From assembly GCA_002269645.1 (NCBI GenBank), contig NIVC01000673.1, positions 186,001 to 250,000 of the forward strand: a stretch of 64,000 bases of DNA, read 5' to 3'. A model generated the notes under the pieces. It was not told the origin of the DNA, searched no databases, and worked only from the letters and a program-made list of their open reading frames with translations. Shown piece after piece: positions 22,385 through 36,558 of the stretch. The first letter of the stretch is position 1, and every line of letters begins with the position of its first letter. The DNA is from Macrostomum lignano (Eukaryota). Position numbers and translations under genes: made by a program.

Positions 22385-25300
22385 ATGGCTGAGGACGCCG
22401 AGCTGCAGGCAGCCACCGAGCTGACACGCAGCAGCTGGGACGTCAACGCGACCGACTCTGACGGCTGCTCGGCCCTGCACAACGCAGTGCAGCTCGGGAA
22501 CTGTCGGGCTGCCGAGCGCCTCATCCAAGCAGCTGCTGACGTCGACCTGCAGACCAGCGACGGCTCCAGCCCGCTGCATATGGCGGTTCAGCGAGACCAT
22601 CTCCAGCTGGCGGAGCTGCTGCTGAGGTCGCAGGCCGATCCCAACCTGCTGGCTGGAGACGGCCAGACAGCCATTCAGATGGCCATCCGAGCTGGCAACG
22701 ACGACCTGCTGCGGCTGCTGCTGGCGGCCGGTGCTGACGCGAACTGGCCGACCGGTGAGCCGCCGCTGCTCACCGCCATCTGTCTGGGACGGGCTGAGGC
22801 CGCGAGGCTGCTGGTCTCGGCCGGTGCCGACGCGAACGTCCGAGCCCGGACAGTGTCCGAGGCCACTGCGCAGGCGCTTCATACAGAAGAGGCGGAGCAG
22901 CTGAAGGAGAGTTTGCCGATGCCTGCGATTCTCGCTGCAGCGAGCCTGGGACAGCGGGAGATTCTGGTCCACCTGCTGGCATCTGGAGCTGACTGCGACA
23001 CGAGAGACGGGAAGAGGGCGACCGTTTTGCACTATGCGGCACGCAAAGGCAGGGAGATCCTGGCGATCGCTTTGTCCCTTCAGCAGAAGATCGACTGTCT
23101 AAATGACAAAGGCTCATCTGCCCTCCACTTTGCTGAATCTGAAGAATCAGTAAGTCAGCTCCTTTTGTTAGGAGCAGACATCGACAGGAGAAACATCTTC
23201 GGCAATTCGCCACTTGTTATGGCTACCGCGAAAGGTAGTTTTCAAGTAGTGGCCAAGCTGATCGACTGTGGAGCAAGCATCGATCTGCAGAACAATGATG
23301 GCGTCCCACCACTGGCCGCTGCATCTAACAAAGGGCATTTACAATTAGTGGCCAAGTTGATTGACTGTGGAGCAAGCATCGATCTGCAGAGCAATGATGA
23401 CCTTTCACCACTGTGCATTGCCGCATTCAATGGCCACTTGCAAGTAGTGGCCAAGCTGATCGACCGTGGAGCAAGCATCGATCTGCAGGACAATGATGGC
23501 TGGTCACCACTGAACACTGCCGCACAGAAAGGCCACTTGAAAGTGGTGGCCAAGCTGATCGACTGTGGAGCAAGCATCGATCTGCAGAACAATGATGGCT
23601 GTTCACCACTGTACATTGCCGCACAGAATGGCCACTTGCAAGTTGTGGCCAAGCTGATCGACTGTGGAGCAAGCATCGATCTGCAGAGAAATGATGCCCG
23701 GTCACCACTGTACATTGCCGCACAGAATGGCCACTTGCAAGTTGTGGCCAAACTGATCGACTGTGGAGCAAGCATCGATCTGCAGACCAATGATGGCGCG
23801 TCACCACTGTTTAGCGCCGCACAGAATGGCTACTTGCATGTTGTGGCCAAGCTGATCGACTGTGGAGCAAGCATCGATCTGCAGAAGTATGATGGCGTGT
23901 CACCACTGCTCGTTGCATCCTTTCAAGGTCACTTGGAAGTAGTGGCCAAACTGATCGACTGTGGAGCAAGCATCGATCTGCAGAACAATGATGGCTGGTC
24001 ACCACTGAACAGTGCCGCAGAGAAAGGCCACTTGCAAGTCGTGGCCAAGCTGATCGACTGTGGAGCAAGCATCGATCTGCAGAACAAGAATGGCGTGTCA
24101 CCACTGACCATTGCCGCACACAATGGTCACTTGCAAGTAGTGGCCAAGCTGATCGACTGTGGAGCAAGCATCGATCTGCAGAACAATGATGGCTGGTCAC
24201 CACTGAACAGTGCCGCACAGAATGGCCACTTGCAAGTTGTGGCCAAGCTGATCGACTGTGGAGCAAGCATCGATCTGCAGAACAATAATGGCTGGTCACC
24301 ACTGAATGTTGCCGCAGAGAAAGGCCACTTGCAAGTCGTGGCCAAGCTGATCGACTGTGGAGCAAGCATCGATCTGCAGAACAATAATGGCTGGTCACCA
24401 CTGAATGGTGCCGCACAGAATGGCCACTTGCAAGTTGTGGCCAAGCTGATCGACTGTGGAGCAAGCATCGATCTGCAGAGCAATAATGGCTGGTCACCAC
24501 TGAACATTGCCGAATTCAATGGTCACTTGCAAGTAGTGGCCAAGCTGATCGACTGTGGAGCAAGCATCGATCTGCAGAGCAATAATGGCGTGTCACCACT
24601 GACCATTGCCGCACACAATGGTCACTTGCAAGTAGTGGCCAAGCTGATCGACTGTGGAGCAAGCATCGATCTGCAGAGCAATAATGGCGTGTCACCACTG
24701 ACCATTGCCGCACACAATGGTCACTTGCAAGTAGTGGCCAAGCTGATCGACTGTGGAGCAAGCATCAATCTGCAGAACAATGATGGCTGGTCACCACTGA
24801 ATGTTGCCGCACAAAATGGCCACTTGCAAGTTGTGGCCAAGCTGATCTACTGTGGAGCAAGCATCGATTTGCAGAACAATAATGGAGCGTCACCACTGAA
24901 TGTTGCCGCAGAGAAAGGCCACTTGCAAGTCGTGGCCAAGCTGATCGACTGTGGAGCAAGCATCGATCTGCAGAACAATAATGGCTGGTCACCACTGAAT
25001 GGTGCCGCACAGAATGGCCACTTGCAAGTTGTGGCCAAGCTGATCGACTGTGGAGCAAGCATCGATCTGCAGAACAATAGCGGCGTGTCACCACTGAACA
25101 TTGCCGCACAGAATGGCCACTTGGAAGTTGTGGCCAAGCTGATCGACTGTGGAGCAAGCATCGATCTGCAGGACAATGAAGGCTGGTCACCACTGTACAT
25201 TGCCGCACAGAATGGCCACTTGCAGGTTGTGGCCAAGCTGATCGACTGTGGAGCAAGCATCGATCTGCAGAACAATGATGGCTGGTCACCACTGAACATT

Positions 25301-36558: not shown

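Follow-up and report, generated by a model that had tools for sequence, protein, structure and literature searches.

Organization of the locus

The window analyzed here is a stretch of 64,000 nucleotides (nt) from the flatworm Macrostomum lignano (assembly GCA_002269645.1, contig NIVC01000673.1, positions 186,001 to 250,000 of the forward strand). Judged from its sequence, the plus strand very probably carries a single four-exon gene, running from position 22385 of the window to position 36558, in which an ankyrin (ANK) array is fused to a cGAS-like nucleotidyltransferase (NTase) in a protein of 2,241 amino acids (aa). The ANK half lies in an open reading frame (ORF) of 1,596 codons at 22385–27175. 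The TAA codon that closes this frame (27173–27175) sits within ttaaa/GTAAGT, which contains a perfect splice donor, AA/GTAAGT (slashes mark exon borders). Exon 1 begins at a predicted start codon, the first ATG of the frame downstream of a stop, and its length of 4,787 nt places its end in phase 2. The acceptor at 34415/34416, ttcattcccacag/C, is the strongest in the region, is preceded by a polypyrimidine tract, and matches the 27171 donor in phase.

Joining the four exons (Table 1) gives a coding sequence of 6,726 nt whose sole stop codon is the terminal one. The predicted fusion protein has a mass of ~241 kDa and an isoelectric point (pI) of 5.3. An earlier note on this DNA, made from the sequence without database searches, had described an ANK ORF of 1596 aa ending at a perfect donor that is phase-matched to the 34415 acceptor, as well as a 7.2-kb intron filled with transposable elements. 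Both descriptions hold: the coordinates agree, the spliced frame is open throughout its 2,241 codons, and the intron of 7,244 nt contains retroelement ORFs with an RVT_1 match and two microsatellites.

A stop codon lies within a GT[AG]AG donor in three of the 45 open stretches of at least 200 codons in the window, and GTAAGT occurs nine times on the plus strand of the 64 kb. A conserved N-terminal helix of the enzyme module (xxFSxRLxxxLxxxGF) begins right at the 34416 acceptor. Exon 2 has no in-frame ATG upstream of the codon for M71, and M71 itself lies within the catalytic D-x-D motif (residues of the enzyme module are numbered from the start of exon 2). A first exon hidden in the gap at 27172–34415 was considered and rejected, as the plus strand of the gap contains neither ANK-like coding sequence nor a candidate that combines an ATG, an open frame, and a strong phase-2 donor.

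The enzyme half of the gene has two counterparts among public protein models. One, P0001, is a UniParc entry identical to exons 2–4 over its length (100%). The other, P0002, is UniProt A0A1I8IHJ4 and shares 89% identity with the same exons. P0001 has the same exon 2/3 junction, and the exon 3/4 junction, ...RILNER/PALRQRC..., is present in both models; the two junctions placed by the earlier note thus have independent support. Both models are 5′-partial and start at ESEFS, the first whole codon past the acceptor, and both stop at EKEGI, precisely at the start of a 28-bp tandem array. Each 28-bp unit of that array carries CAG/GTGAGT plus TGA. The coincidence of the model ends with the acceptor and the array indicates that repeats have truncated the public models at either end. 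Exact look-ups in public assemblies of the unspliced ANK protein, P0001, P0002, and a third sequence, P0003, returned no record. A homology search with the unique N-terminus of the ANK region gave a best match of 37% identity, so no public model of the ANK half of this gene exists. As the earlier note had anticipated, ORF-level annotation therefore splits the gene: its public models begin at the acceptor, and its ANK exon has no public protein.

Paralogous genes and the choice between one gene and two

The family to which the gene belongs was surveyed by an exhaustive profile-free search, with representatives clustered at 50% identity. At E ≤ 1e-3 the search yielded 342 representatives, of which 67 pass E ≤ 1e-30. 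Every top match whose source was looked up comes from M. lignano, and many consist of a long ANK array followed by Mab-21. In many members the Mab-21 module lies 500–2,000 residues from the N-terminus. The upstream regions of P0035, P0036, P0037, P0041, and P0043, all M. lignano entries in GenBank or UniProt, are ankyrin arrays according to Pfam. A narrow hidden Markov model (HMM) detects at least two upstream ANK units in 45 of the 110 members whose module has an intact N-terminus; 13 members stand alone. These sequences suggest that the ANK-cGLR-like family is a large expansion and essentially species-specific. The paralogous ANK–Mab-21 genes for which the earlier note had proposed a check are present in GenBank in number.

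The paralogues bear directly on the splice across intron 1. P0005 (BOX15_Mlig002049g3) encodes ANK repeats, a linker, and NTase residues 1–380 in one uninterrupted exon, so the fusion exists in the family without any splice inference. In three other paralogues an ANK exon is followed by the same exon plan as in the window gene. Intron 1 is of phase 2 in all four genes and interrupts ...VPVLDL/N-ESEFSQRLHESLSSSGF in the window gene, ...ILPPVH/R-LESTVQHSLRLHQSLLLSGF in P0171 (PAA83064.1), ...NRDYD/E-HELSQQLHQALTRSGF in P0041 (PAA61028.1), and ...STPEQ/P-EILQ... in P0023. The paralogue introns lie 1–7 codons or less from the corresponding point, immediately ahead of the shared N-terminal helix, and ELSQQLHQALTRSGF of P0041 aligns without gaps to EFSQRLHESLSSSGF of the window gene. 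The second exon encodes ~112–127 aa in the paralogues versus 115 aa in the window gene. Intron 2 is of phase 1 throughout. It lies five residues past a GHI motif at the same position in the window gene (DGHIKHQID/L), P0171 (DGHIDYKVH/V), and P0041 (NGHIACKGF/A), and is one residue off in P0023. This shared phase-2/phase-1 plan is strong evidence that the acceptor at 34416 corresponds to that of the paralogues and is cis-spliced to an ANK exon upstream.

The locus could also be divided into two genes, namely an ankyrin-only protein ending at the TAA codon at 27173–27175 and a stand-alone Mab-21/cGLR-like protein, possibly downstream in an operon, whose transcript is trans-spliced to a spliced leader (SL) near 34416–34435 and uses the AUG of the leader. 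About 30% of M. lignano genes are trans-spliced, the 35-nt leader ends in ATG, and operon spacers are often repeat-inflated (PMC8629364). The gap in the window shrinks to less than 1 kb once the microsatellites and the retroelement are removed. Three weaker AGs, located 4–19 nt downstream of the main acceptor, would put a leader AUG in frame; here exon starts at 34420, 34426, and 34435 would give M-SEFSQRL..., M-FSQRL..., and M-RLHESL..., respectively. The starts of P0001 and P0002, right at the acceptor, are those expected of a transcript from which the leader has been trimmed. Several further points count against a fused gene. The ankyrin ORF ends in a legitimate stop codon, and stand-alone paralogues exist. 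No public protein spans 27171/34416, the junction being derived from sequence comparison. A homology search with the junction-spanning sequence retrieved generic ankyrin proteins only; it is a weak negative, as it missed P0001, with which the query shares 115 identical residues. At its ends, the ANK exon scores 94.7 bits against paralogue ANK modules and 84.0 bits against generic ankyrin, which is no clear preference.

However, a leader AUG at 34415/34416 itself would be out of frame and lead into a dead end of 66 codons, so an SL-donated start at the main acceptor is ruled out. The stand-alone paralogues do begin with Met at the equivalent position, but their ATGs are genomic and not leader-derived. 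In P0171, P0041, and P0023 an ANK exon is cis-spliced, with identical phase, to the corresponding acceptor. In addition, the location of the ANK stop codon within a perfect, phase-matched GTAAGT would have to be a coincidence. On this evidence two separate genes are improbable, and one cis-spliced gene is preferred; fused and stand-alone SL-trans-spliced isoforms could coexist.

Other members of the family show further arrangements. P0093 (PAA93319.1, 2,111 aa) has the order ANK, Mab-21, ANK, caspase, and the Mab-21-like members P0088 and P0197 (PAA59752.1 and PAA80948.1) are also fused to a caspase (Peptidase_C14 / p20). The domain composition of these caspase-fused paralogues suggests a direct tie of the family to death or immune signaling. 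Another contig of the assembly (GCA_002269645.1, NIVC01000561.1; locus L001) contains three tandem ANK–Mab-21 paralogue copies within 23 kb, at 1388–4047, 10001–13870, and 18497–23252. Together with the family members BOX15_Mlig016540g3, Mlig006569g1, and the SPRY-domain Mlig023272, which are recorded on a contig of equal length (472,844 bp), these copies suggest a genomic cluster.

Composition of intron 1 and integrity of the gene

Intron 1 consists in essence of a GATA microsatellite into which a retroelement with reverse transcriptase (RT) and GIY-YIG sequences, on the minus strand, is interposed. The minus-strand ORFs match RVT_1 with 37.6 bits (Pfam cut-off 29.6), and a GIY-YIG match at aa 590–626 reaches 18.3 bits (E 0.003), under its Pfam cut-off of 22.6. 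In Penelope-like elements, an RT is paired with a GIY-YIG domain at the C-terminus. A second copy of the retroelement was not found in ~120 kb of other loci. Flanked by two GATA-type blocks, the retroelement looks like an insertion into the microsatellite.

Sequences of this kind make it necessary to consider a decaying or mis-assembled copy, in which the retroelement and the microsatellite have inactivated the gene or its two halves have been joined artificially at the 1.6-kb (AGAT)n tract. The 411-copy perfect microsatellite and the 34 near-identical 99-bp units of the ANK array are classic assembly hazards, and exact look-ups in public assemblies returned no product for either half. M. lignano is, according to PMC10468722, a hidden polyploid with many near-duplicate copies. 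Against decay, the 6.7 kb of coding sequence, whole array included, are free of stops and frameshifts, and all catalytic residues are intact. Against mis-assembly, the donor and the acceptor on either side of the supposed join fit each other, also in phase, and reproduce the exon plan of the family. Moreover, A0A1I8IHJ4, a second copy with 89% identity, ends at both of these repeat boundaries as well, suggesting the same layout. Decay or mis-assembly is therefore highly improbable.

The GATA microsatellite, the retroelement, and the 28-bp array have broken earlier assemblies or gene models, leaving the ankyrin half unannotated and a gene of 2,241 aa represented publicly only by a 641-aa fragment clipped at its 5′ and 3′ ends.

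Table 1. Features of the ANK–NTase gene and its repeats (positions in the window; slashes mark exon borders)
Feature	Position	Strand	Description
Exon 1	22385–27171	+	Predicted start codon and entire ankyrin region; 1,595 codons + 2 nt; phase-2 end
Homogenized array core	23177–26542	+	34 repeats in perfect 33-aa/99-bp register, aa 265–1386
Non-ankyrin insertion	26642–26740	+	33 aa (aa 1420–1452), followed by 3 divergent repeats and cap
Intron 1	27172–34415	+	7,244 nt, phase 2; donor AA/GTAAGT, acceptor ttcattcccacag/C; placed from sequence and paralogue introns
(AGAT)411 perfect microsatellite	27812–29456	.	Tandem Repeats Finder (TRF), 100% matches; GC 0.25, GC skew 1.0
Retroelement	29930–33959	-	Two overlapping ORFs, 683 and 669 aa; RVT_1, sub-threshold GIY-YIG
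(ATAG)70 microsatellite	34104–34382	.	TRF; same GATA-type repeat, ends 33 nt before acceptor
Exon 2	34416–34759	+	N-terminal spine helices, NTase N-lobe, G48-S49, D70, D72; phase-1 end
Intron 2	34760–34879	+	120 nt, phase 1; C/GTAAGT ... ttaactgcag/T
Exon 3	34880–36309	+	D132, CC...CH quartet, Mab-21_C, most of C-terminal extension (from ~35527)
Intron 3	36310–36393	+	84 nt, phase 0; AGG/GTGAGT ... aaattgcag/C
Exon 4	36394–36558	+	Final 54 codons and TGA stop (36556–36558)
28-bp tandem array	36543–36909	.	13 copies (TRF); starts in last five codons and provides stop codon

A predicted cGAS-fold enzyme module

Exons 2–4 almost certainly encode a cGAS-fold enzyme with an intact active-site signature, as seen in the predicted structure. 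The AlphaFold2 model of the 641-aa part has a pLDDT of 80.5 and a pTM of 0.84. A Foldseek search of the PDB with this model places cGAS structures at ranks 1–40 (E 4.6e-07 to 2.5e-05, probability 1.00, target TM 0.45–0.57), with 6ct9_A as the best match (E 4.6e-07). They are followed by coral Sp-cGLR1 (8gjy) and MAB21L1 (5eom), also with a probability of 1.00. Of the two Pfam profiles named in the earlier note, Mab-21_C (PF20266) matches aa 208–289 (35158–35403) with 32 bits, above its gathering cut-off of 24.1. The N-terminal Mab-21 core (PF03281) gives no match at E ≤ 1 with the single sequence, so the N-lobe is recognizable only by fold and motif. A single-sequence search of PDB sequences with the enzyme part found nothing, and a profile search of the same sequences with the full family alignment was dominated by the ankyrin columns and yielded no NTase alignment.

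The active-site residues lie where the earlier note had located them. G48-S49 is encoded at 34558–34563 and S-D-M-D at 34621–34632, with D70 at 34624–34626 and D72 at 34630–34632. The third Asp, D132 in a VDLV motif, is encoded at 34930–34932 and follows the D-x-D by 60 residues, not by the ~59 given before. In the numbering of the fusion protein these residues are G1644, S1645, D1666, D1668, and D1728. In a 24-member family alignment S49, D70, and D72 are invariant in 22 of the 22 members that cover them, and D132 is an Asp in 19 of 21 paralogues; both exceptions look like broken models. The GS loop follows strand 44–47 in the AlphaFold2 model, D70 and D72 are on strand 70–76, and the catalytic residues lie on successive predicted strands.

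Four residues, C139, C140, C170, and H171 (34951–34956 and 35044–35049), form a CC...CH quartet whose columns are 90–100% conserved across the paralogues. The quartet is a possible zinc site, located between the catalytic strand and the C-lobe, approximately where the Zn thumb is found in cGAS. Also conserved in the family are C277 and H280, in a CMxHFF motif.

The module could be fused to the array and still be a pseudo-enzyme or a scaffold without nucleotide signaling, in a protein that functions outside immunity, for example as a cytoskeletal or membrane anchor by means of the giant array. Such a pseudo-enzyme or scaffold role has been proposed for MAB21L1 and MiD49/51, MAB21L1 (5eom) is among the structural matches, and giant ANK arrays elsewhere, in ankyrins and NOMPC, are structural adaptors. 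Several further observations tell against a catalytic, messenger-producing module. The PF03281 profile is not matched, as noted above, and the pI of the NTase is 7.75 (5.4–9.2 in the family), so a strongly basic nucleic acid-binding surface is not evident. Five M. lignano family members were expressed from just past the ANK region by Li et al. 2023 (bioRxiv 10.1101/2023.02.22.529553 / PMC9980059; Table S3, rows 89–93). The active-name column of these ANK-less constructs is empty (compare ‘09. Sp-cGLR1’), which places them outside the 15 named actives. According to the same study, cGLRs are lacking in most platyhelminths, which, like nematodes, possess Mab21-like proteins alone. In the literature found, no STING is documented for M. 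lignano and no paper links Macrostomum to STING or cGAS; flatworm cGLRs appear only in the tables of Li et al.

Against a pseudo-enzyme stands the conservation of the active site. The GS motif, both Asp residues of the D-x-D, and the third Asp are kept in dozens of paralogues at 28–45% identity, which is hard to explain without catalysis. Mab21L1/2/3, by comparison, have no predicted functional active site, and many of the cGLRs screened seem inactive in vitro, likely for want of ligands (Li et al., PMC9980059). The species-specific expansion, the hypervariable repeat positions, and the caspase fusions also look like those of an immune or death-signaling family. A pseudo-enzyme or scaffold is thus an explanation of low probability, and a catalytic module is favored.

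The module continues into a C-terminal extension of ~315 aa (35527–36555, aa ~331–645 of the enzyme part) that is mostly helical and family-specific. It is conserved in the paralogues, with the motif LPDCARxxRExLRAxAxLK. A separate model of the extension has a pLDDT of 80.1 and a pTM of 0.82. In a Foldseek search of the PDB with this model, the best E value was 0.75, and weak TPR- or AimR-like helical matches were dismissed. The extension may be an undescribed domain.

The ankyrin array

The array contains ~46 repeat slots, of which Pfam recognizes 42 stretches and a narrow local HMM 36. The earlier note was right about a giant array, its count of ~44 being slightly low with respect to the slots. 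Eight divergent slots at the N-terminus precede 34 repeats in register, one further repeat, the non-ankyrin insertion, three divergent repeats, and a cap. The insertion was considered as a hidden intron and rejected, since there is no donor-like site inside it. TRF describes the core as a period of 99 with 32.9 copies, 89% matches, and no indels, and several of the 99-bp units are exact duplicates. This near-identity points to recent unequal exchange.

Amino acid variation within the repeat SIDLQNNDGWSPLNIAAQNGHLQVVAKLIDCGA is concentrated at positions 6, 8, 10, 14, 15, 18, 19, and 23. These positions correspond to the concave-surface contacts that are randomized in designed ankyrin binders. 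A crude ratio of nonsynonymous to synonymous variation (pN/pS) is 0.70 at the variable positions versus 0.30 in the framework. Although elevated, the value for the variable positions stays under 1 and thus does not support positive, diversifying selection on the ANK contact positions.

This gene is the family member with by far the longest array, at least twice as long as the longest other. One HMM counts 36 ANK units in it, whereas no other member of the family exceeds 15. The region upstream of the module comprises 1,595 aa versus at most ~960 aa among the simple ANK-then-Mab-21 members examined.

Proposed mechanism and significance

The protein is proposed to be cytosolic and to consist of three parts, an N-terminal solenoid of ~46 repeats, an NTase of the cGAS/Mab-21 fold, and the helical C-terminal domain of ~315 aa. 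It would be produced by cis-splicing of the ankyrin exon to the enzyme exons across the 7.2-kb intron. The variable ankyrin groove would act as a recognition or regulatory module. Upon ligand binding or relief of autoinhibition, the NTase would make a nucleotide second messenger, which would in turn act on a downstream effector. Taken as a whole, the combination of a fusion gene, a cGAS-fold enzyme, and a sensor/messenger mechanism is probably the best explanation of the locus. The mechanism by itself, in which the groove of the array binds a ligand or partner and thereby controls an NTase that makes a nucleotide messenger, is put a little short of evenly balanced on the sequence evidence. The species-specific expansion, the pattern of repeat variation, and the caspase-fused paralogues lend it indirect support. 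A role as a pattern-recognition receptor with the array as sensor or autoinhibitory module, as put forward in the earlier note, is plausible.

A broader proposal can be made. M. lignano may have its own large repertoire of receptors derived from a cGAS-like enzyme, in which fast-evolving, homogenized ankyrin arrays provide variable ligand recognition, comparable to the LRRs of NLRs and to VLRs, with the 46-repeat member as the extreme case. The output would pass through the C-terminal domain and, in some paralogues, a fused caspase, and not through canonical STING. We regard this proposal as unlikely; if true, cGLR immunity would have a branch that senses proteins and may not depend on STING. 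Effectors other than STING are also suggested by the fusion of some paralogues to caspases and by the lack of a fold match for the C-terminal domain.

The family represents a large and barely discussed ANK-cGLR-like expansion in a flatworm for which transgenesis and RNA interference are available. If the ankyrin arrays are sensors, full-length proteins, not ANK-less cores, are the right subjects for assays, and such assays could reveal cGLR ligands that are not nucleic acids.

Other features of the window

A second tandem array, with a unit of 15/29 bp and ~48 copies, follows the 28-bp array at 37028–37728. Upstream of the gene, the minus strand carries a non-LTR (long terminal repeat) retrotransposon at 13673–17557, whose 903-aa ORF contains AP-endonuclease (Exo_endo_phos) and RVT_1 domains. 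The 377-aa ORF that precedes it has no Pfam match. Three further plus-strand features are unrelated to the ANK-cGLR gene: an ORF at 3786–5066 with a RINGv domain (MARCH-type), a 772-aa open stretch at 122–2440 with weak, sub-threshold WD40-like matches, and a weak Ig_2 match at 59136–59819.

Comparison with known systems

The enzyme module shares with the cGAS and cGLR structures (6ct9, 4k97, and Sp-cGLR1 8gjy) a bilobed NTase/Mab-21 fold and the order of the GS motif, the [DE]h[DE] motif, and a third acidic residue on successive strands. Sequence identity is just 10–16%, and the target TM scores of 0.45–0.57 are accompanied by a root mean square deviation of 7–9 Å. The third Asp follows after 60 residues here and after ~90 there. 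The near-neutral pI of the module contrasts with the basic DNA-binding surface of cGAS. The Zn thumb of cGAS has the motif H(X5)CC(X6)C, in place of which the module has its CC...CH quartet, and ~315 extra residues extend its C-terminus.

Fungal NLRs offer a second comparison. In work by Dyrka et al. from 2014, they are said to carry highly internally conserved ANK, TPR, or WD arrays, read as rapid diversification of a recognition module. They combine, like the window gene, a signaling domain with near-identical tandem repeats in which variation is limited to a few surface positions. The signaling module is a cGAS-like NTase here and not NACHT or NB-ARC, the repeats are N-terminal and not C-terminal, and positive selection is not demonstrated in the window gene (pN/pS 0.70).

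Related M. lignano proteins are found in GenBank. PAA93879.1 (BOX15_Mlig007069g1, 1,575 aa), PAA83064.1 (Mlig017752g2, 1,200 aa), and PAA61028.1 (Mlig021960g2, 1,146 aa) each have an ANK array, a Mab-21-like NTase, and the same C-terminal extension, and their enzyme parts are 40–46% identical to that of the window gene. Their arrays are shorter and more divergent, and they are annotated as hypothetical proteins only. The first introns resolved in the GenBank paralogues measure 242–565 nt versus 7,244 nt here.

The architecture has been catalogued by Li et al. (PMC9980059), who predicted ~3,000 cGLRs, 87% of them single-domain, with ANK-cGLR as a minor architecture. Their Table S2 includes the M. 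lignano Ank_2 entries PAA86972.1, PAA45980.1, and PAA68676.1, among others. Macrostomum is not mentioned in their main text and is absent from the cGLR/STING counts of their Table S5. The M. lignano ANK-cGLRs of that study and the window gene share the motifs GSFADGWG...DSDIDV, MRVSTTLLER, GLKTYHAKNLLFYMLDETP, and CMxHFF, the order of ANK followed by NTase, and the predicted-cGLR class. The window gene differs in being absent from their tables and, as a fusion, from public protein sets. The novelty implied by the earlier note was thus overstated, since ANK-cGLR fusions, those of M. lignano included, were already listed in Table S2. Both the architecture and the family are catalogued, though undescribed, and the window gene adds an unannotated member to a kind of protein already known. 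The new elements are this member itself, its exceptionally large homogenized array, and its ~315-aa C-terminal domain without a PDB fold match.

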